Position numbers and translations under genes: made by a program. A stretch of 28,549 bases of DNA, taken from positions 1-28,549 of IMG/VR virus record IMGVR_UViG_3300014914_000030, one strand, 5' to 3'. This document shows, piece by piece, positions 3,536 through 28,549 of the stretch. The first letter of the stretch is position 1. Each line of letters begins with the position of its first letter. The notes under the pieces were generated by a model, which saw only the letters and a program-made list of their open reading frames with translations, ran no database searches and was not told the DNA's origin.

Positions 3536-4849
3536 ATGATATGCTTGGTTAGTTTACCGTTTAAGGTGAATCTTGTTTCTCCTTTGAGTTTAGCAATTTT
3601 GAAGGCTTTAATTCCAGAATATGATTCTGTTTGTGTAGATTTATCCCCAGAGTTTAATCAATGTTTCATGAGATGGGTTTTAAAAGACAAGATTGAGGAA
3701 CTCCATGAAGAGACCTATCGTAGGGATTTTTATCCAGTTGAGTTATTGTTAAAGGGAGAGGGAGATTCCGAGTTATACAGCATTTGTCATAGCATGGCTG
3801 ATAGGATTCTTTCGTATGACCCTAAAGTGGTGTGCTTTTCTGTTCAGCTAGGCAATATTGGGACTAGTCTAACTGTCGGCAAAATCCTCAAAGATGAAGG
3901 AATAAAAGTTATTTTTGGTGGGAGTGCTTTTCTGTGGAAATCCAAGATTTATGCAAGAATGTTTCCTTGGATTGATTGTGTTGTAGAGGGAGAGGCTGAG
4001 CCAGTTTTTAGGAGTTTAATCCATAAGGTTATAAAGGGATACAAAGTTCAGAGGTTCATCATTAGTCCTATGCTTCTTGACTTAAATGAGTCGCCTATTC
4101 CAGATTACGGAGACCTAAACTTAGATAATTACCAACTTATAGGCATTGAGACTCAGAGAGGTTGTGTCAATAGGTGTTCTTTTTGCAATAATAGATTTTC
4201 ACAGTTGTACGAAGTTTATAGAGAGAAAAAAGTTGAGAGAGTTAAAAGAGAACTTGAAATCTTGAAGGAATATAACAAGCCTTTCTATTTTTGCGATAAC
4301 ATCACAAATCCTAATAGGAAGAGGCTTATTTCGTTATGTAAGGCTATAGCTCCATTAGGCATAAAATGGATGGGGGAGTTTTTGCCTAGAATTAGTTTTC
4401 AAGAGGCATATTGGTTATGGAAAAGTGGTTGTTTTTCCGTTACTTTAGGAGTTGAAAGCCTATGCGATAGAACCTTGAGGAAAATGGAGAAGCCTATCAC
4501 AGTTAGGGATATTTTAAATTCCATTGAAGCCCTAAGCATGTTTGGAATAGACATTCAAGTAAATCTAATTATTGGTTACCCTAGAGAGAGTCTGCTTGAT
4601 TTCTTGCAGACGGTTGTAAGGTTGTTTAGGGTGGAAAATAAAGTTAAGAGGTTTCTTTTTTCTGAGTTTGTAGTACCTCAAAAATCAAAAATTTACAATA
4701 ATCCAGATAAATACGGAGTAAAATTGCTTTCTAAATGTGAAAACAGTATTTTTTCAAGAGCTTTTCAATTAAAAAGTGAGTGGGAAAGAAGAAAGCAGAA
4801 ATTCTTATTAATTTTTATGGAGCTTCTCTTCAATAGGGAGTCTTTATGA
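3536..4849 (+). CDS. B12-binding-domain radical SAM protein
   Basis: ETQRGCVNRCSFC (CxxxCxxC); N-terminal PLSLAILKA, VIFGG, VVEGEAE typical of cobalamin-dependent class B radical SAM; LGVES and IIGYPRES in the barrel. Confidence 0.92.
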   Translation: MICLVSLPFKVNLVSPLSLAILKALIPEYDSVCVDLSPEFNQCFMRWVLKDKIEELHEETYRRDFYPVELLLKGEGDSELYSICHSMADRILSYDPKVVCFSVQLGNIGTSLTVGKILKDEGIKVIFGGSAFLWKSKIYARMFPWIDCVVEGEAEPVFRSLIHKVIKGYKVQRFIISPMLLDLNESPIPDYGDLNLDNYQLIGIETQRGCVNRCSFCNNRFSQLYEVYREKKVERVKRELEILKEYNKPFYFCDNITNPNRKRLISLCKAIAPLGIKWMGEFLPRISFQEAYWLWKSGCFSVTLGVESLCDRTLRKMEKPITVRDILNSIEALSMFGIDIQVNLIIGYPRESLLDFLQTVVRLFRVENKVKRFLFSEFVVPQKSKIYNNPDKYGVKLLSKCENSIFSRAFQLKSEWERRKQKFLLIFMELLFNRESL

Positions 4850-5049
4850 AGGTAGCACAGTTCCGATTTGCTATTAGTCAAGAGGGTGGTGGAGAACACG
4901 TTATGTACAACATGGCTAGAGTTCTGAAGGCAAGCGTTTTAGCTTTTGCTGTAACATCAGGAAAACTAAAAAAGAAAGGATATATCAAGGAGATAGCCTC
5001 TGATGTTGACAAGTTGATTCTGACACATAATCGTTTGGTAAAGGTGTAA
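4846..5049 (+). CDS. N-terminal fragment of a GT4 glycosyltransferase
   Basis: MKVAQF...GGGEHVMYNMARVL is the canonical GT4 N-terminal beta/GG-E/helix motif that the downstream ORF lacks. Confidence 0.7.
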   Translation: MKVAQFRFAISQEGGGEHVMYNMARVLKASVLAFAVTSGKLKKKGYIKEIASDVDKLILTHNRLVKV

Positions 5050-5059
5050 AAGTGGTCTT

Positions 5060-6025
5060 ATGGAAACGTACACAAAGAATGAGATTGAATCAATTTTGAA
5101 ATTAAGAAGGCTCTTCAGAGATGAGATTCTAAAGGAATTTGATGGGGTTGATGTTGTTGTTTTGCATTGTCCTTGGGATTTAGAGGTTTTTGATGGAGTC
5201 AATGATAAGGCTGTTGTTTTGTATGAACATAGAGCTTGTAGATTTGCAACTTTCATGTTTGATGAGATAATCAAGTATGTTGAGCCTCTACGTGCAAGAT
5301 TAGTTATTCGTGATAGAGGGTGGGTTTTGCAGAAGCATAAAGAGTTGTTCAAGAAGGCTGATTTGATTATTGTTAATAGTAAGTTTATTCAAGAGCAAAT
5401 GCTGAAGTGGTTCGGAATTGAGACCTATGTTTGTTATCCACCTATTGATTTGAGGGTTTTTCGACCAGTTAAGAATCCAAGCAGAGATTTCTTTCTTTCC
5501 GCACAGAGGGTTAACTGGCAGAAAAGAATTGACCTTCAGATTGACGCTTTTCGTGGTCTGAAAGAGAGGCTGATTATTGTCGGTAGCCCTAATGAGCCAG
5601 AGCCTAATCCTACATTGGTAGAATTAGCTAAGGATTGTCCCAATATTGAGATTTTAGGTGGTGTGAAGTTAAAGGAGCTTGTTAATTTAATGGCAAATGC
5701 TAAGGCTGTTATTCAAACTGGTTACTATGAGGATTTTGGATTAGTCCCAGTTCAAGCTTTGGCTTGTGGTACTCCAGCTATAGTGGTTGATGAAGGGGGA
5801 TTTAGAGAGACCATTCATTCCCCAAAGCTTGGTGTCAGAATAAAAAAGCCTTATCTGGAAAACTTAAGAAAAGCTGTTTTGGAGTTTGATATTAGCAGAT
5901 ATGACCCTAAGATATTGAGGGAAGAAGCTAAAAAGTATGGGTTTACGGAATTTAGAAAAAGATTCAATAAGTTACTTAAACTTGCTGTGAGGAAACATGA
6001 GGAACGATATAATTTACGTAGATAG
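5060..6025 (+). CDS. GT4 (GT-B) glycosyltransferase, main part
   Basis: IIVNSKF, YPPID, KRIDL, EDFGLVPVQALACGTP, GGFRETI. Confidence 0.92.
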   Translation: METYTKNEIESILKLRRLFRDEILKEFDGVDVVVLHCPWDLEVFDGVNDKAVVLYEHRACRFATFMFDEIIKYVEPLRARLVIRDRGWVLQKHKELFKKADLIIVNSKFIQEQMLKWFGIETYVCYPPIDLRVFRPVKNPSRDFFLSAQRVNWQKRIDLQIDAFRGLKERLIIVGSPNEPEPNPTLVELAKDCPNIEILGGVKLKELVNLMANAKAVIQTGYYEDFGLVPVQALACGTPAIVVDEGGFRETIHSPKLGVRIKKPYLENLRKAVLEFDISRYDPKILREEAKKYGFTEFRKRFNKLLKLAVRKHEERYNLRR

Positions 6026-6524
6026 GGAAAGAGGTCTCAGAGTTAGAGAGGCTGATTTAAGTAAGGTCGAAGATTTGAAGATTTTAGCTAGAGCAATCAA
6101 AAGCGATTTTTTAGCTGGTAGAGAGACTCCAACTGCGGTAAATGACCCTTTCTACAGCAAGTTCTGGAGCTATTATCTAGAGCTAGGCTGGGATATGTTC
6201 TGTTATCATCATAACCCTACAAAAACTAAATTTTTCATTGTGCTTAAAGACATGAGAACGGTTGGGTTTGCCCGTGTTAAAGAACAAAAAATACTGGGAA
6301 ATAAGGTCTTTTATCCAACGATTTATGCTAATGAGCTTGAGTATCCTTGGAGTGAGATAACTAACGATATAAGGGTCTGCATTTTTAATATGTTAAGAAG
6401 ATTTGGTTTTGATAGAGTTTTTATTGAGCTTCCTTTTGGTCATGAACTTAATAGTAAGCTTCCTTTGAGGAAGATGGTAGTAAGATTTAAAGAGTTAACA
6501 GAAATATGGGAGATGGGTTCATGA
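5997..6524 (+). CDS. Hypothetical protein, GNAT-like fold
   Basis: LRVREAD..D start and KFFIVLKDMRTVGFARV beta-hairpin resemble GNAT; acetyl-CoA motif not clear. Confidence 0.5.
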   Translation: MRNDIIYVDRERGLRVREADLSKVEDLKILARAIKSDFLAGRETPTAVNDPFYSKFWSYYLELGWDMFCYHHNPTKTKFFIVLKDMRTVGFARVKEQKILGNKVFYPTIYANELEYPWSEITNDIRVCIFNMLRRFGFDRVFIELPFGHELNSKLPLRKMVVRFKELTEIWEMGS

Positions 6525-7420
6525 CTTATGTTGAGCTATTGTTTAGGGTAAACCCAAAATTTCGACTCAAAGCTGACAAAGTTAGAGATATTTTAAATAA
6601 GAGGTTAGAACTTGAGAAAATACCGTTTGTTTTTGCTATTCATTCCATTACGGTTATGTCTAAGTGGTTAAGCGTTATTGTCGAAGTACCTAGGATTTTG
6701 GAAGTAAAGCCTTATGTATTGAACTTAAAATTCTTAGCAATCAGCCTTGGTGGTTTTGTTATGGATTCTCTTCTAGATTATGGTGTTAGATTTTTAACTT
6801 ATGAAGTGCATGGGTTGACTAGTTCTCTAGTTTATCATAAGGATTGGAGAAAGGAGAAGGTTGCTTTATGTGTTATCGCAAAGGATGAAGAACCCCATGT
6901 AGCAGACTTCATGAAATGTGTTGAGGGATGGTTTGATGATATTGTTGTTGGGGTAGATACCAGAACTGTGGATAGTACTTGGGATAGGTTTGCAGAAAGA
7001 GGGGCTAGGTGCTTCTATATTGATTGGGAAGACCATTTTGGTGAATTTAGGAATAGGACTATGAAATTTGTTGCTCCAGAGATAGATTGGGTTTTCTGGT
7101 TGGATGTTGATGAGTACCCAGAAGATAGGCTTCTTGAGAATTTGAAAGGTTTAGTTCAAACGAAAATTTATGATGCGTATTCTTTCATTAGAGTTAATCT
7201 GGAAACAAAAACTGAAGAGAGGGTTGTTAGGCTTTTTAGAAGGTCTAAGGGGAAGTGGGAAGGGAGAGTTCATGAATCTGTTTCTGGTATTGATTCAAAG
7301 AGGATTTGTGAGACAGACTTTAAGATTTTTCACATTCAGAGATGGATTAAAGAAGGTGGAAGTGTAGCTGAGGAACGTAATGCATTTTACCGTAAACTAG
7401 AAAATATGGATTCAGCCTAG
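6506..7420 (+). CDS. GT2 (GT-A) glycosyltransferase with extra N-terminal domain
   Basis: VALCVIAKDEE, WEDHFGEFRN, WVFWLDVDE (DxD), RLFR...WEGRVHE. Confidence 0.88.
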   Translation: MGDGFMTYVELLFRVNPKFRLKADKVRDILNKRLELEKIPFVFAIHSITVMSKWLSVIVEVPRILEVKPYVLNLKFLAISLGGFVMDSLLDYGVRFLTYEVHGLTSSLVYHKDWRKEKVALCVIAKDEEPHVADFMKCVEGWFDDIVVGVDTRTVDSTWDRFAERGARCFYIDWEDHFGEFRNRTMKFVAPEIDWVFWLDVDEYPEDRLLENLKGLVQTKIYDAYSFIRVNLETKTEERVVRLFRRSKGKWEGRVHESVSGIDSKRICETDFKIFHIQRWIKEGGSVAEERNAFYRKLENMDSA

Positions 7421-7442: not shown

Positions 7443-9656
7443 TTGAGCATTACTATAAGAGCATTAGATGAGTATGGAGAGTTTTCGTTTAACGGTATTA
7501 ATGAGTTTGGTCTTCAGAGGGTTGGGTTTCTTGTTGAGTTTGGTAGCCGTGTAATTGTTCAGCAAATTGAGGCTGTTTTTACGGATTATGCTGTAGGAGA
7601 ATACATTATCCAGACTATTCACGGAATGTTTGTGGAAGTTGTTGAGACGGTCATTGTAGCTGAGTATCTGAGAAAAAGGTCTGAAAAGGTGATGGTTGAT
7701 GTAAGCATAGGGTCAGATTATCTGAGAAAGGCTACTCTTAAGGTCTTTACTGACAGTAGCATTGTTTCTGATAGGATTATAAAAGAGGCTATTAGATGTT
7801 TTGTTGACTCTGTGGTTTCAAGTGATTATGTACGGAGAGAGGTCAGTAAAAGTATTTTGGACTTGTCCAGAGTTAGCGATTGGATAGGGAAGACTTTAGC
7901 TAAAGTGCTTGTTGATTCTGAGGTTACGGTTGATTGGATTTCTAAGGCTATTTCTAGGAGCTTCATAGACTCCAGCAAATCCTATGATTATGTCAGTAAG
8001 GCTTCAATTAAGAGTTTTAAGGATGTAGGAAAGGGAATTGATAGAATTTCAAAAAGTGTCGGCGTATCAAGGCTAGATACGGTTCTTGTCTCTGATTGGA
8101 TTTCAAAAGAGTTGCTTAAGGCTGTTTTGGATTTAGGTAAGGTTGCTGATTGGGTCAGCACTTTAAAGGCTAAAATTATTGAGGTAAAGGATGTTGTGTT
8201 TCCAGACTACTCCATAGCTAAAGATTCTGTACTGGTTAAGAGAGATTCAAGCTTAATTAGTGATTTCTACAGTAAGAGTGTTGAAAAGGTTGCTACTGAC
8301 TCTGGGGTTATAAGTGATAGAGTGTCTCTTGCGTTTTCTAAAGTTCTGGTTGATTCTGGTGTTGTAAGCGATTACTTCAGTAAAGCTATTTCCAAAGTAG
8401 CAAGAGACATAGGAAAGGGAGTGGATTGGATTTCTAAGGACATTTTGGCTTCTATAGTTGAAAGTGCAAGGGTTTCTGATTGGGTTTCAAGAGATATGGT
8501 CTATTCGCTTATGGATTCAATTTCTGTAGCTGACTATATTAGAAGGGAGTTCAGTAAGAGTTTCAGAGATTATGTGGTAGGCGAATACGTAATTACAAAA
8601 ACTGCTACTCTGCACAGAAGCTATGCTGATGTTGTCAAATCGGTTGACTTTGTTTCTAAGGGTCTTTTCATCCCTCTGAAGGATACAGTAATAAGCTCAG
8701 ATTACCTTGTGAAAGAAATATCAAGAGTTGTTTCTGATGTCGCAAGAGTCCTCGATTGGATAGGTAGAAGGGTTGCAGTTACTGTTTCAGACTTAGTTAA
8801 AGGTCTAGATTATGTCAGTAAGAGCCTTGCAGTAAACATTTCTGATTTGGCTAAGGCTATTGATTGGATTGTTGTTCCTACGGTTAAGTTGATTGTTGTC
8901 AAGGATGTTGTGTTTCCAGACTTCTCTACAGCTAAAGGAGTTGAAAAGCCATTTAGAGAGGTTATCTCCGTCATTGACTTGAAGGCTGTTAAGGATATTG
9001 CTAAGAGATTTGTTGATTATGTTATAGTTAGAGACCAAGCAATTAGAACTAGGATTATTGAGGTCTTTGACCGTGTTATTGCTGACTTTGAGGTTGTCAA
9101 GGGCTTAAGTCCAGCTATTAGGGATTTGGTTAAGTCGGTTGATGTCATTACTAAGCTTAGATATACACTTACTGGAATTGATGTTAGACGTGTCTATTTC
9201 CACAAGTATCTAGGCGATATTATTGAGGATACGGATGAAATCAATAGGGTTGACTCTTCTAAGAACTTGCTGAACATGATTAAGAATTTGGCTAGTAAAA
9301 TGGGGGTTGCAGATGACCCATACATTAGTGCAGATATTTCTAAGCTTGAGGAAATCGTAGGGACAATGGAGTACGTTAAGGATGGAGAGTACGTTTATGC
9401 TAGGCATGTTAATGTGTTTGTGGATTACATGACCTATGCCATTGATGTTGTGCAGTTGCTTTATGATAAGTGGAAGTCTGCTAAGGGGACTAGTCTTCCA
9501 GAGGTTGAGTACTGGCTTGAAATGGCTAAGGGAAGAAAGGATTTAATGCGTACTGTCAAGTTTGGTGATATTGTTCTGACTAGAGACCACAACTTGATTA
9601 TAGATACTTTGAAGCCCTTAGAGTGCAGTATCAGAGTTATGGATAGGGAGTGGTAG
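7443..9656 (+). CDS. 737-aa fibre-like protein with 18-aa repeats
   Basis: Over 25 units such as DWIGKTLAKVLVDSEVTV / DWISKAISRSFIDSSKSY / DYFSKAISKVARDIGKGV, then a distinct C-terminal domain. Confidence 0.8.
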   Translation: MSITIRALDEYGEFSFNGINEFGLQRVGFLVEFGSRVIVQQIEAVFTDYAVGEYIIQTIHGMFVEVVETVIVAEYLRKRSEKVMVDVSIGSDYLRKATLKVFTDSSIVSDRIIKEAIRCFVDSVVSSDYVRREVSKSILDLSRVSDWIGKTLAKVLVDSEVTVDWISKAISRSFIDSSKSYDYVSKASIKSFKDVGKGIDRISKSVGVSRLDTVLVSDWISKELLKAVLDLGKVADWVSTLKAKIIEVKDVVFPDYSIAKDSVLVKRDSSLISDFYSKSVEKVATDSGVISDRVSLAFSKVLVDSGVVSDYFSKAISKVARDIGKGVDWISKDILASIVESARVSDWVSRDMVYSLMDSISVADYIRREFSKSFRDYVVGEYVITKTATLHRSYADVVKSVDFVSKGLFIPLKDTVISSDYLVKEISRVVSDVARVLDWIGRRVAVTVSDLVKGLDYVSKSLAVNISDLAKAIDWIVVPTVKLIVVKDVVFPDFSTAKGVEKPFREVISVIDLKAVKDIAKRFVDYVIVRDQAIRTRIIEVFDRVIADFEVVKGLSPAIRDLVKSVDVITKLRYTLTGIDVRRVYFHKYLGDIIEDTDEINRVDSSKNLLNMIKNLASKMGVADDPYISADISKLEEIVGTMEYVKDGEYVYARHVNVFVDYMTYAIDVVQLLYDKWKSAKGTSLPEVEYWLEMAKGRKDLMRTVKFGDIVLTRDHNLIIDTLKPLECSIRVMDREW
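8187..8922 (+). repeat. 22-bp exact direct repeat pair in fibre gene (8187..8208 and 8901..8922)
   Basis: AAGGATGTTGTGTTTCCAGACT occurs twice, 714 bp apart, both encoding KDVVFPD. Confidence 0.85.
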
Positions 9657-9659
9657 GGC

Positions 9660-10157
9660 TTGGGGCTAAAGCTCAATTTGGGTTGTGGATTGGATAAGAG
9701 GGAAGGTTATGTGAATATTGATGTTAGGGAAGATGTTGAGCCAGACATGGTTATTGATTTAGAAAAGGAGCTTCTGCAAAGGTTTGAGGATGAAAGTGTG
9801 GATGAGATTTTGGCTAAGGATTTCTTGGAGCATTTAAGCTGGAGAGTTGTTGAGACCTTTCTTAGGGATTGTCATAGGGTCTTGAAGCCTAACGGTAGAA
9901 TCTATATTCAGACTCCAGATTTGGAAGCTATTGCCAAAAAGGTTATTCTTAATCCCAATTTCAAGTTCGGAAGTCTCTATGGCTTTAAGGCTATTAGCTA
10001 TTGGGTTTATGGTGGTCAAGAGTACCCAGAGAATACTCACAAGTCTGGTTTTACAATGAGTAGTTTAAAACGGTTGCTTGAAGACATTGGTTTTGAGGTT
10101 TTGGAGTTGAAAAATGATAGTGGTACGAATATTGTTTGCTGGGCTAGGAAGCCCTAG
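9660..10157 (+). CDS. Class I SAM-dependent methyltransferase
   Basis: LKLNLGCG...GYVNID, FEDESVDEI, FLEHL, RVLKPNG. Confidence 0.92.
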   Translation: MGLKLNLGCGLDKREGYVNIDVREDVEPDMVIDLEKELLQRFEDESVDEILAKDFLEHLSWRVVETFLRDCHRVLKPNGRIYIQTPDLEAIAKKVILNPNFKFGSLYGFKAISYWVYGGQEYPENTHKSGFTMSSLKRLLEDIGFEVLELKNDSGTNIVCWARKP

Positions 10158-10855
10158 AGATTTCTTATTTCATGCCAAAAAACTGTATTTAGAACTGGAT
10201 GTTTTACGCAAGGGTGGAATAACCTACCGTTTTCTCCCAAAAATTCTCCATGGTCAGATGTTATCACAACTTTTCTATTTTTAGGTATTTTTGGCAGAAG
10301 ATTTGCTTTTATCTCTTTTAGGACTATTTGTAGGTTTTCTTTGTAAGCTTCTTTTATGATGTCTAGTGGGGGTAGATGTTTGGGATAAGTTACTCCATCA
10401 ATGATTGTATTTAATGGGTCGGGTTTCCATGCTTCAAATGTTACTCTGATTTTCCCTATGCTTGGGAAGTGTGGTTGCATATAGTGAATTATGACTCTTT
10501 CATTTTTAAGGTAAGGAAGGGAAGCTTTGGTAACTTCTCTGGGGGGAACTGTTTTAAGCTCATCATCCCAACCAAACTCCCATACGTCTATAACCTTCTT
10601 AAAGTGCTCTAACCCTAAGAAATCTCCAACCTTTATTTTGCTGTTACAAAAGGGGTTTGCTGAGACATATACGTATGGATACCTTGAAGGGAAATTCATG
10701 GTCAGCCATGTTTGAGTATCACTTGATTCAACTTCTAACTTTAAAAGCTCTCCCTTGAAAGGAGTAAACTTCTCATAATAATCATATCTGCAAGCATCCA
10801 GAACTATTAAGATGTCCCAAGACCACTTGTGAATATACTGAGTTGGTGCTTTCAT
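10154..10855 (-). CDS. Alkaline phosphatase/sulfatase-superfamily protein
   Basis: LIVLDACRYD, IHYMQPHFP, VITSDHGEFLGENG..HP metal-binding motifs. Confidence 0.88.
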   Translation of the reverse strand: MKAPTQYIHKWSWDILIVLDACRYDYYEKFTPFKGELLKLEVESSDTQTWLTMNFPSRYPYVYVSANPFCNSKIKVGDFLGLEHFKKVIDVWEFGWDDELKTVPPREVTKASLPYLKNERVIIHYMQPHFPSIGKIRVTFEAWKPDPLNTIIDGVTYPKHLPPLDIIKEAYKENLQIVLKEIKANLLPKIPKNRKVVITSDHGEFLGENGRLFHPCVKHPVLNTVFWHEIRNL

Positions 10856-21469: not shown

Positions 21470-21535
21470 TGCTTAAGTCCCTTATATACCTTACGGTTCT
21501 AAAGGGTATCAAAACGCTTATATACCGTAGGTGTA
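21470..21535. promoter_or_regulatory. Divergent BRE/TATA promoters
   Basis: Minus strand AAGGTATATAAG; plus strand AAAACGCTTATATA; between divergent genes. Confidence 0.65.
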
Positions 21536-21560
21536 TTAAGTTAATTAGGGGGATGGAAAA

Positions 21561-22652: not shown

Positions 22653-22708
22653 TCCTTTTCAAAATATTATCGTGAAAAACTATTTTAAGCCTTATCGGAA
22701 TGAGGGTC

Positions 22709-22780
22709 AGTTAGCCCATTTCCGAACATCGGGGAGATTTGGGGCGTAACTGTAGGTGTAATTTGGGGGTTGGGCTAACT
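22709..22780. repeat. 10-bp inverted repeat enclosing G-rich loop
   Basis: AGTTAGCCCA (22709..22718) / TGGGCTAACT (22771..22780). Confidence 0.7.
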
Positions 22781-22860
22781 TCATCATCCCATACTCTAAA
22801 ATTTTAGACAGAGACTTGAATTTTTTGTGGTTAAGGTTTATATTCAAAAAATAAAAAATA

Positions 22861-23580
22861 GTGAAATTGCGGTCTGCAAGCAGAAAATATAGGAGTTGTA
22901 GCATAAAAATGTTACGAACTGAAATGAGCCGTGAAGAATGTCTAGCATTATTATCTACTACTACTACTGACTGGGTTAAGGTCAGAGGCTTCTCAATTGA
23001 GCTTCTGCACCATCTCAGAGACAAGCAACTACTCCTATGTGAACTCTGCGAACTGACTGGAAAAGACCCCATTTACGTAAATGTCTATCTGAATCGCCTT
23101 AGACGGTACGGATTCGTTCAGAAAGACCGTTATTACTATAGAATAACTGAAATTGGAGTTGCTTTGCTTAATATACTTAATACACTTAATACACTTAAGT
23201 ACACAAAATATAACAGTTATATAACAGTTATTAAACAGAAATATAACAGAAATATAACAGAAAAAAGAGCTTCAAAGCAAGCTTCTTTGAGGCAAACTGG
23301 CTTGGAGCTTTGGCTTCAGAGTTGCGATTTGAGTGAGAAAGAGAAGGAAGTAGTAGAGGTACTGATAGACCATTACAACAAAACTGGCTCTAAATATCTG
23401 TATTTTGACACTCCATTCGACTTTGCAGAAAGATTCAAGATTAGTCCACAAATGGCTACTGAAGTACTAAAACGCCTAAAGCAAGACGGAATCATTTACG
23501 TGTTCAGAGACAGACAACTTGGCTCATGGAAGATAGGCTTAAAGTCAGCCTTCCTTGAAGCCCTCAAGCTCTCTCAATAA
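22861..23580 (+). CDS. Double winged-helix protein, candidate replication/origin-binding protein
   Basis: Two wHTH signatures (YLNRLRRYGFVQK..YYYRITEIG; VLKRLKQDGIIYV..WKI) joined by a repeat-encoded linker; true start may be 22909 or 22924. Confidence 0.75.
   Translation: MKLRSASRKYRSCSIKMLRTEMSREECLALLSTTTTDWVKVRGFSIELLHHLRDKQLLLCELCELTGKDPIYVNVYLNRLRRYGFVQKDRYYYRITEIGVALLNILNTLNTLKYTKYNSYITVIKQKYNRNITEKRASKQASLRQTGLELWLQSCDLSEKEKEVVEVLIDHYNKTGSKYLYFDTPFDFAERFKISPQMATEVLKRLKQDGIIYVFRDRQLGSWKIGLKSAFLEALKLSQ
23167..23260 (+). repeat. Tandem 9-bp (x4) and 11-bp (x5) AT-rich repeats, iteron-like
   Basis: CTTAATA(T/C)A x3 plus CTTAAGTACA at 23167..23203; AAATATAACAG, TTATATAACAG, TTATTAAACAG, AAATATAACAG, AAATATAACAG at 23206..23260. 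Confidence 0.9.
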
Positions 23581-25021: not shown

Positions 25022-25876
25022 CTAGACCACCGCAACTACTGGGCTTAAAATCTTGTGTAGCTCATCAAACATTCTGTTCTTGGTTACAATGTCTTGACGG
25101 ACATTATGCCAAATCCTCTCGGTAACATCATTGTAGGTATCCCAGACGGTCTTGGACTCATCGAACCACACAAGCTCAGTTCCTTCCGTCTTAATGTAAG
25201 GTGGTAACAGCTTTCTTGGAAGTCTGCTTTTAGCTATGCTCTCAGCAATTTCCTCATTAAGCTGAAGCTCAACCATCTTACGATAAGCCTCTAACACCTT
25301 CTCCATAGCATTGATTACATCCATTGTACGTTTCAGAATATTATCCATGTCAACCTTCAAGCCCTTAGTGTGCTTGTGGTAAAACCTCGCAAGCTCTCTG
25401 TAGCCCATGAAAACACCATTAGAGCACATTTCTCTATATGTGAATCCAGTAACGCTAAACGCTAGTGTTCCATCAATGCTGTTTCTGAAGGCAAATCCAA
25501 TCTTGCACCTATCCCTTCCGTCTATCTCATGCCATTCTGGGAGAGTATAGACCAAATAGACCTTCCAAGAATCCTTGCTGAAATAGGCGTTACCCCACTC
25601 AGTAGGTAGCCTAGTCTTCTCAAGCAGAGGCTCTGCATTCAGCCTACTAGCTATTTCATCAGCTACTTGCTTGACAACCTCATTAGGAAGAACTTGATAG
25701 CCCCTACCGACAATTGCTACAAGCCTTCCGTTCTTGAGAATAGCCTTGTAAGGTGTCTGCTTGTCATTGTATTTTAGGTATGCCTCTGTAATGTTGTATT
25801 CTTTCCAAGTCTCATCTATTTTACCTACATCAAATACAATCTTCATCTCGGACACGGCTACATCCCCCCTTTTCAT
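25022..25876 (-). CDS. DUF932/DUF945-like phage/plasmid protein
   Basis: IVGRGYQVLPNE, FRNSIDG, YREMCSNG, TVWDTYNDVTE match the family motif order. Confidence 0.8.
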   Translation of the reverse strand: MKRGDVAVSEMKIVFDVGKIDETWKEYNITEAYLKYNDKQTPYKAILKNGRLVAIVGRGYQVLPNEVVKQVADEIASRLNAEPLLEKTRLPTEWGNAYFSKDSWKVYLVYTLPEWHEIDGRDRCKIGFAFRNSIDGTLAFSVTGFTYREMCSNGVFMGYRELARFYHKHTKGLKVDMDNILKRTMDVINAMEKVLEAYRKMVELQLNEEIAESIAKSRLPRKLLPPYIKTEGTELVWFDESKTVWDTYNDVTERIWHNVRQDIVTKNRMFDELHKILSPVVAVV

Positions 25877-27373: not shown

Positions 27374-28357
27374 TTAGCTCAGCATGTCAAGGATTTTCTG
27401 TTTAGCCTTAGCCTTGTAGTCTTCCAATAGCTGTTTTACTTGACTTCTGAGTGCTTCAGCCTTAGCTCTGAGCTTTTCGTAAATCTCCCTATCCCAGTAG
27501 CTATAAATGGCTTCTATGAGTATTCTCCTAAACTCTTCTGGTACGTAAGCAACTAGTGAATCAAGCTCTACAATATACTCATGCTCATAATTCTTGTACC
27601 TTGGGTCTCTCTGCAATTTGGCTAAGGTTTCTGCGTCTTCTGGTCTAGGTGGAAGGTTGTACTTCCTAACTTGCTCTGGAGTAACAGCAAGCCTTATCAG
27701 TTGCACCTTATCCTCTGGAAGACCAAAATAGTCTAAGGCTTCCTTGAGAAACCTCTCAATGTCAACTCCAGAAGGGTCTAAGTCTCCCAAGTACAATATA
27801 ATGACTTTATCATGTTTCTCAAGCTCATACCTCAATGCTTGAACATTGTTGTAGATAAATGTCCAGCTTGAATATCCTCTGTTAACCCTTATCAAAACTC
27901 CTAGTCCTTCTGTCCAGTTTTGAATTGTAGAGCTTAAAGCTTCCTTCTCTATCCAAATCTCAACTGCATAAGGCTGTTCTGCCCATCTACCGACAGTTAT
28001 GAAAGGCTGTAGGTAGTCAAAGGTTTCTGCTAGCATTTTGTCAATGTCAAGCTCTTCAAGTCTCTGCTTTAGGGTCTCCTCAAACCTTTCAACCTCATCA
28101 TCTCTGAATCTTCCATCATCAATATTTCCATAGACAAGTCTGGTTTTGTCCTCAAGGAAATCCCACTCATATCTCCCTTGCTTCCTAGCATTAACTAGCT
28201 TCCTTGACAGTTGCTTGTAGCTACTCCTTGTGTTTGGAATTATGTTCTTGCTGACCAAGTAGTAGAACAATGTTCTAAGTGTAGGCTTGACTCCTTGACT
28301 ACTGAAGTACCTTAAAGCTTCATCCACATGTTCTAGTACTTCTCCCCAATTTATCAC
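27374..28357 (-). CDS. Topoisomerase VI-A/Spo11-related (Mini-A-like) WHD-TOPRIM protein
   Basis: TLRTLFYYLV (catalytic Tyr region), VEIWIEKEAL, RGYSS, ILYLGDLDPSG (DxD), VELDSL; probable GTG start at 28357 with GGTGA SD. Confidence 0.82.
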   Translation of the reverse strand: MINWGEVLEHVDEALRYFSSQGVKPTLRTLFYYLVSKNIIPNTRSSYKQLSRKLVNARKQGRYEWDFLEDKTRLVYGNIDDGRFRDDEVERFEETLKQRLEELDIDKMLAETFDYLQPFITVGRWAEQPYAVEIWIEKEALSSTIQNWTEGLGVLIRVNRGYSSWTFIYNNVQALRYELEKHDKVIILYLGDLDPSGVDIERFLKEALDYFGLPEDKVQLIRLAVTPEQVRKYNLPPRPEDAETLAKLQRDPRYKNYEHEYIVELDSLVAYVPEEFRRILIEAIYSYWDREIYEKLRAKAEALRSQVKQLLEDYKAKAKQKILDMLS

Positions 28358-28426
28358 CTTAATCACCGTAATATACTTAAGTGCATTAGGTGTATATAAG
28401 CATTGTGGTCTAGTCCACAACCAAAC

Positions 28427-28549
28427 CCTTCTCTCCTCTGCTACTGCTATAGACTTGACCACTCCTTATTCTCATGCCTAAAGCTTTTGTAATTTCAAGC
28501 TTTCCGTAATTAAAAATTCAATATCCTCGACATACAACCACAAAATCCT
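28427..28549. repeat. Right inverted terminal repeat (123 bp)
   Basis: Exact reverse complement of 1..123. Confidence 0.98.

Follow-up and report, generated by a model that had tools for sequence, protein, structure and literature searches.

In two experimentally established systems, a replication origin lies inside the initiator's own gene, in the segment that encodes the linker between two domains. [quoted passage not shown] The lambda iterons are units of about 19 bp, four to six in number, the sequence-specific domain of O is N-terminal, and the partner is P-DnaB. In pSK41-type plasmids of the RepA_N family, an N-terminal winged helix binds four Rep boxes located centrally within rep, the central domain encoded by the ori is a dispensable linker, and the conserved C-terminal domain contacts the host protein DnaG (PMC5703833). 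RepA_N iterons are mostly semi-palindromic around a poly-A tract (PMC7145576), and the family is found in Firmicutes plasmids. Initiators of the Rep_3/RepE/pi type also have two winged-helix domains in one polypeptide and bind tandem direct repeats next to an AT-rich region, but their iterons of about 19–22 bp lie outside the gene, and both winged helices read one iteron. Tandem 11-bp direct repeats occur in the centromere parC of plasmid R1, where they are bound cooperatively by the ribbon-helix-helix protein ParR, and AspA of the Sulfolobus plasmid pNOB8 is a small archaeal winged-helix centromere binder.

Here, we analyzed a gene with a similar layout in the 28,549-nt record IMGVR_UViG_3300014914_000030 (also Ga0164311_10000123), which was analyzed over its whole length and is called the window below. 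A sequence-only reading had described five 11-bp and four 9-bp repeats between two winged helix-turn-helix (wHTH) domains, had compared the arrangement with lambda O-type initiators, and had suggested a novel replication module that may recruit the host replisome. The described arrangement was confirmed, whereas its interpretation was only partly supported, because the lambda O analogy is apt in layout but origin function remains inferred and the protein does not belong to the lambda O, RepA_N or Rep_3 families.

A conserved repeat array between two winged helices

The gene is located at 22909..23580 on the plus strand and encodes a protein of 223 aa. The open reading frame extends to a GTG at 22861, but two homologues of 223 aa start with MLRTEM, and therefore the ATG at 22909 is almost certainly the real start. 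Pfam detected HTH_5 at aa 47–88 and HTH_24 at aa 189–212, counted from the GTG. An AlphaFold2 model built on 78 homologues (mean pLDDT 82) predicted two winged-helix domains at aa 28–79 (22990..23145) and aa 141–211 (23329..23541) in ATG numbering. The predicted secondary structure elements of the N-terminal domain are H28–36, H43–50, H54–67, E70–73 and E76–79, and the recognition helix comprises aa 54–67 (23068..23109). The N-terminal domain is the variable domain of the family and is inferred to bear the specificity. The C-terminal domain is the most conserved part of the family and a candidate partner-recruiting domain, and its invariant or near-invariant residues include V148, V149, L152, H155, T159, G160, S161 and K162. 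The two domains are joined by a low-confidence helix (aa 95–122), which is the part encoded by the repeats. The linker-coding segment as a whole (aa 86–128, 23164..23292) has a pLDDT of 52–65. The gene is preceded by a non-coding region (22653..22908) with an AT-rich stretch at 22820–22860, which is the third least stable 40-bp window of the genome, and a TATA-like AAAATATA at 22884–22891, and this region is presumed, by inference only, to contain the promoter.

Tandem Repeats Finder (TRF) detected a 9-bp array (CTTAATACA, 4.1 copies, 93% matches) at 23167–23204 and an 11-bp array (AAATATAACAG, 5.3 copies, 82% matches) at 23206–23263. The latter comprises five head-to-tail units at 23206–23260, four of which carry the exact core ATATAACAG, while the third is degenerate (TTATTAAACAG). 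The degenerate third unit, which would give a "2+1+2" pattern of sites, is not general, as the mean identities per unit across the arrays of the family are 0.77, 0.91, 0.84, 0.88 and 0.87.

Next, the conservation of the array was analyzed. A metagenome scan yielded 149 relatives of the protein, of which 80 loci were retrieved, and six additional loci were obtained from species-representative genomes. All six are Bathyarchaeia MAGs, as are all hits with an organism name, and one locus lies inside an 820-kb scaffold. The family comprises 241 clusters at 50% identity. In nearly every gene, TRF reported an 11-bp array of about 4.4–5.3 copies at the same place, but the unit sequence differs between clades, e.g., AAATATGAAAG, AATAACACAAC, GAAAGAAAATA, AACAGAAGGAA and ATCAAAAGAAA. 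The best 55-bp windows of the 86 family genes had a median of 35 of 44 matches at lag 11, in contrast to a median of 18 and a maximum of 25 in 318 control ORFs from the same loci, and 84 of the 86 genes exceeded the control maximum. Lag 11 gave an identity of 0.80, and no other lag from 6 to 15 exceeded 0.64. Thus, the array is far beyond chance. Seven remote family members (profile E-values of about 1e-9 to 1e-25) were also sampled, and four of them have an 11-bp array at the same place, with wholly different units. Of the others, locus L091 has no array, L088 has a 9-bp array, and L093 has an array of about 10 bp.

The linker peptide is not conserved, and the alignments show only 11-residue periodic peptides that equal 3 × 11 bp. 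The conserved core of the unit is the same in all three reading frames, which indicates that selection acts on the DNA and not on the peptide, although this is supportive only, because the phase was chosen by the core motif. No function at the RNA level was indicated, as Rfam returned nothing in the window and the repeat region folded no better than shuffled sequences (z −0.9). An apparent tandem gene duplication at the retrieved locus L031 is only an N-terminal remnant.

Covariation of the recognition helix with the repeat unit

Residue 63 in the recognition helix is Arg in the window (codon CGC, 23095–23097) and covaries with position 9 of the unit. Arg was found together with ACA[G/C] in 24 loci, Asn with AAAG in 61 loci, and Asp with AAAG in one locus, while Arg with AAAG and Asn with ACA[G/C] did not occur. 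Hence, the association holds for 85 of the 85 loci with Arg or Asn at this position. On a tree built without the helix and linker columns, the trait switched at least 8 times on well-supported branches, and 16 times on the best tree, and the base switched concordantly every time (sign test p = 0.0078 for the 8 independent switches). The pair is by far the strongest of all helix-by-unit column pairs (mutual information, z = 40). Residue 63 explains 91% of the entropy of the base, compared with at most 52% for any other column. The protein columns that best predict the iteron core all lie in the N-terminal part (aa 5–85), whereas the C-terminal domain shows the lowest covariation. Arg with C (G on the opposite strand) and Asn with A correspond to the classical Arg-G and Asn-A preferences. 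However, helix and array are only about 100 bp apart, and therefore recombination could carry them together and inflate the covariation.

The closest relatives, loci L003, L004 and L005, provide a natural swap. The window and L003 share iteron and helix but differ in the 9-bp unit, without a change in the protein's domains. In L004 and L005 both the iteron (all good copies together) and the helix have changed, while the C-terminal domain is identical in the window, L003 and L004, and differs in L005. Thus, the N-terminal domain tracks the 11-bp unit, but nothing in the protein tracks the 9-bp unit, which therefore seems to be selected for composition rather than for sequence. In summary, it is very likely that the protein binds its own in-gene repeats, although this is inferred from sequence alone.

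Duplex stability, genomic context and the replicon

The exact core ATATAACAG occurs four times in the 28.5-kb genome, all within the array, and matches with one mismatch elsewhere are at chance level, so the genome has a single cis site and not a regulon. Nearest-neighbor energies revealed that 23167–23267 is the least stable 100 bp of the genome (−1.047 versus a mean of −1.278 kcal/mol per bp, sd 0.044), more than 5 sd from the mean. The same is true for windows of 40 and 60 bp. In 57 relatives of at least 4 kb, the AT-rich block just upstream of the array is at the median 99.98th percentile of instability of its locus, and 93% of the loci are at or above the 99th percentile. In most clades this block reads TATATAATAATATAATA. 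The block of 9-bp repeats is therefore a candidate DNA-unwinding element.

In 38 of 57 loci with sufficient upstream sequence, a large ATPase gene lies within 1.5 kb upstream on the same strand. It encodes either an XPB/Rad25-like SF2 helicase (PDB 6p4f, E 1e-25; NCBIfam XPB), mostly with a gap of 4 bp to the target gene, or a HerA-like ATPase (18 loci) with a long coiled coil and a C-terminal winged helix, as judged from an AlphaFold2 model that matched 9x1m by Foldseek (E 3e-11). Representatives are the XPB-like protein encoded at 8485–9978 of locus L048 and the HerA-like protein encoded at 425–2116 of locus L021. The HerA-like family has more than 1000 members, those with an organism name being Bathyarchaeia, and some carry inteins. 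Additional neighbors are a ParB-like protein (ParB_N + HTH_ParB) in 18 loci, a DNA methylase, a Cas4/Csa1-like nuclease, a BREX-type ATPase, surface proteins, and a NurA nuclease, and one relative is near a NurA + DUF87 pair. No MCM, Orc1/Cdc6, primase-polymerase or Rep appeared among the neighbors, and the clade of the window (L003, L005) lacks both motors. None of the retrieved relatives has terminal direct repeats that would indicate circular mini-replicons.

The window is a complete linear genome with inverted terminal repeats of 123 nt (1–123 and 28427–28549, 100% complementary). It encodes a SIRV2-type major capsid protein (PF12193, E 1e-20), an Hjc-like resolvase, three GT4 glycosyltransferases, a radical-SAM protein, methyltransferases, and a 1217-aa protein of the kind found at rudivirus termini. 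The tape-measure hits of the latter are best read as a P1070-like terminal-fiber protein, not as evidence of a tailed virus. This is the gene set of a filamentous virus of the Ligamenvirales type, and such viruses of Bathyarchaeia have been described as "Chiyouviridae" (PMC10541130). Neither the DNA nor the protein matched the phage genome collection searched. Two findings that would have contradicted the sequence-only reading, an absence of the repeats from homologues and a conventional Rep among the hypothetical ORFs, were both looked for. The repeats are present as described above, and Pfam and PHROGs scans of the window's ORFs revealed no other initiator and no polymerase, primase, helicase or conventional or HUH Rep. 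A PHROG label "DNA topoisomerase" for the 362-aa ORF 27374–28462 found no support in Pfam, NCBIfam or PDB sequence searches, and this ORF is not counted as a replication enzyme. The sequence-only reading had cautioned that the skew polarity fits an internal terminus better than an internal origin. However, all 37 genes have purine-rich coding strands (mean 0.566) and every gene to the right of the target gene is on the minus strand, so that the turn of the cumulative GC skew near 22–23 kb reflects the switch of the coding strand and carries no information in either direction.

Possible functions of the array

We propose that the gene encodes an origin-binding initiator with the origin inside its own gene. 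In this view, the N-terminal winged helix would read the five units, and because these are about one helical turn apart, four or five protomers would line up on one face of the DNA. The bound array would bend or strain the DNA and open the adjacent AT-rich block, and the C-terminal winged helix would then recruit a DNA motor. In most relatives this would be the XPB-like helicase or the HerA-like translocase encoded upstream, and in this virus, which has neither, a host factor. The linker peptide would simply be what the origin DNA happens to encode. The repeats, their conservation, the covariation, the stability minimum, the uniqueness of the site and the synteny were established computationally, while binding, melting, recruitment and replication are inferred. 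Origin function is judged to be about as likely as not, which is less certain than self-binding.

The arrangement shares with lambda O the iterons between two domains of the encoded protein, the adjacent AT-rich tract, and an N-terminal domain that appears to be the specific one. In contrast to lambda, the units are 11 bp, contiguous and directly repeated, the candidate partners are XPB-like or HerA-like motors or a host factor, the host is an archaeon, and the genome is that of a linear filamentous virus. No match to Phage_rep_O was found in Pfam (E ≤ 0.1) or by fold. The closest match in logic is pSK41 Rep, with which the central location of the sites and the non-conserved linker are shared. 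However, no RepA_N match was found in Pfam at E ≤ 0.1 and no RepA structure among the Foldseek hits, a weak DnaD_N hit (E 0.006, 17.3 bits against a cut-off of 27) falls in the C-terminal and not in the N-terminal domain, the repeats are simple and direct, and the family is found in archaeal mobile elements. In comparison with Rep_3 initiators, no Pfam or structural match was found, the 11-bp units lie within the gene, and only the N-terminal helix covaries with the unit. The protein also differs from Orc1/Cdc6, which have an AAA+ ATPase domain followed by a winged helix, as it has only 223 aa and no P-loop domain. A profile search against PDB sequences and Foldseek searches against PDB and BFVD yielded only generic winged-helix regulators of the MarR/ArsR type, and two BFVD hits labeled replication initiator had TM values below 0.3 and are not informative.

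Several points argue against an internal origin. No experiment or read-depth data bear on replication, the protein shows only generic winged-helix similarity and matches no known initiator family by sequence or fold, XPB and HerA are repair-type motors and not known replicative helicases, and the window's own clade lacks both. The main evidence against an internal origin is comparative. In the rudivirus SIRV2, replication starts at the termini with a Rep protein (PMC5062984), and this genome also has inverted terminal repeats and a resolvase, although no Rep was found. The lipothrixvirus AFV1 is reported to start replication from an internal D-loop (Pina et al. 2014).

The best surviving alternative, though unlikely, is an autoregulatory operator or roadblock, at which a transcription factor of mobile elements would stop elongating RNA polymerase inside its own gene, or control an internal promoter formed by the AT-rich block, and thereby keep its own level constant. 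The MarR/ArsR-type fold, the similarity of TATATAATAATATAATA to an archaeal TATA box and the single self-directed site are compatible with this, and the binding evidence applies equally. However, a roadblock does not need five phased sites plus the least stable DNA of the genome in every one of about 85 relatives, no conserved internal start codon follows the block, the tight operon with DNA motors is unexpected for a mere autoregulator, and the second, highly conserved winged helix would have no role.

Two further alternatives are less likely still and about equally so. A partition centromere would be in line with the 11-bp direct repeats, the ParB-like neighbors in 18 loci, weak profile matches of the N-terminal domain to AspA (E 0.05–0.08, not significant), and a ParA/CbiA gene near one remote member. 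However, no partition NTPase such as ParA or ParM was recognized in the window, and none apart from that one gene was found among the sampled neighbor families or Pfam-annotated contigs of relatives. In addition, a lytic-type linear filamentous virus has no obvious need for partition, a centromere does not need a melting-prone block, ParR has a different fold, and here the site lies inside a gene. Alternatively, the array might be a loading site for a translocase used in packaging, transfer or end processing, analogous to an oriT or to the pac sites inside the small-terminase genes of P22, SPP1 and P1, with the protein marking the DNA for the HerA-like ATPase. HerA/FtsK-type ATPases package or pump DNA in several systems, and the HerA-like neighbors and the NurA + DUF87 pair would fit. 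However, the window has a SIRV2-type filamentous capsid protein and no recognized packaging ATPase or terminase, an XPB-like helicase is not a packaging or transfer motor, and no capsid or conjugation genes were recognized next to the relatives. Slippage-prone DNA that merely encodes a flexible, charged linker is very unlikely, because, although the linker is Lys/Asn/Arg/Glu-rich and modeled with low confidence, TRF also reports 4- and 7-bp periods in purine-rich arrays of many relatives, and the retrieved locus L083 has lost 33 bp, the same core is kept in different frames, the copy number stays near 4.4–5.3, and linker composition cannot explain the perfect covariation with a residue in another domain.

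A more far-reaching reading is possible but doubtful. The family would be a previously undescribed archaeal initiator family, the first defined origin and initiator for mobile elements of the uncultured Bathyarchaeia, and the first internal origin mapped by sequence in an Adnaviria-type virus. The DNA would be opened in a new way. A phased filament of winged helices would anchor an XPB-type or HerA-type double-strand translocase beside the melting-prone block, much as XPB of TFIIH opens promoters, and swapping Arg and Asn at one helix position would suffice to re-target the protein to a new iteron, so that related elements could become mutually compatible. Full-text searches revealed no description of this family or of an in-gene iteron origin in archaea, which is absence from the literature searched and not proof.

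Bathyarchaeia are abundant and uncultured, and nothing is known about how their viruses and plasmids replicate. If the proposed reading is right, the family gives a sequence-readable origin marker for well over a hundred of their mobile elements and a candidate initiator for a filamentous virus that lacks a recognizable rudiviral Rep. The inferred Arg/Asn-to-C/A switch is a one-residue protein-DNA recognition rule found in nature, and the association with XPB-like and HerA-like motors hints at an origin-opening route unlike the DnaB- or MCM-loading pathways. Even if the site proves to be an operator or a centromere, the result stands on its own, as a cis site hidden in a linker co-evolves with the protein it encodes across about 85 elements.

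Termini and gene content of the viral genome

The first and the last 123 nt of the genome (1-123 and 28427-28549) form perfect inverted terminal repeats, and the contig is a complete linear genome of a Ligamenvirales-like filamentous virus. Two genes on the minus strand were unexpected in this context. The 362-aa ORF at 27374-28462 (-) matches phrog_6247, which is labelled "DNA topoisomerase", and relatives with 25-31% identity are present in 83 bacterial phage genomes. However, searches with Pfam, NCBIfam and PDB sequences yielded no match for this ORF. Nearby, at 25022-25876 (-), a DUF932 / TIGR03299 "phage/plasmid-like" protein is encoded. It is odd to find this bacterial-phage pair in an archaeal filamentous virus.

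In addition, a cluster at 3536-7420 (+) encodes a B12-binding radical-SAM enzyme, a GT4 glycosyltransferase and a GT2-like glycosyltransferase, and it is followed by a 737-aa ORF and a SAM methyltransferase (to 10157). This is a sizeable modification module for a virus of 28.5 kb. The 737-aa ORF (7443-9656, +) contains internal DNA repeats of the three repeat families D1, D2 and D7, which are spaced about 384-714 nt apart, and thus, the protein is built of repeated modules. Only a weak methyltransferase-like hit was obtained for this ORF.

A further repeat was found at 21528-21547, 1.6 kb upstream of the in-gene array. It is an inverted copy (85%) of two of the 9-bp units (TGTATTAAG) and holds the only other exact CTTAATACA in the genome. 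However, this might be due to chance.

ATPases and nucleases encoded near relatives

The HerA-like ATPase encoded at 425-2116 of L021, one of the loci carrying a homologue, and its relatives (family F1) are predicted to have a long coiled coil and a C-terminal winged helix. The family has more than 1000 members, and those with an organism name are Bathyarchaeia. There is no Pfam model for this family, and some copies are interrupted by inteins. In another locus (L096, 3122-4261 and 9348-10997), a member of the double winged-helix family lies near a NurA nuclease and a DUF87/HerA ATPase, the archaeal end-resection pair, on a mobile-element-like contig.

Family members in one MAG and exceptions to the 11-bp array

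Three different scaffolds of one Bathyarchaeia MAG (DRTY-6 bin 50; loci L082, L083, and L086) each carry a family member, and two of these share the same recognition helix. If the arrays are iteron origins, this raises a question of incompatibility, or, alternatively, it may reflect binning of several elements.

The array format did not turn out to be uniform among the homologues. L083 has lost exactly 33 bp (at about 10200-10300), which corresponds to three units and is in frame, and it keeps about two units. In one further locus (L050) the period is 10 bp, whereas two others (L043 and L068) show only purine repeats of 4 or 7 bp. Remote family members also differ: L088 has a 9-bp array, L093 has an array of about 10 bp, and in L091 no array is present. 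Therefore, the 11-bp format is not universal at the edge of the family.
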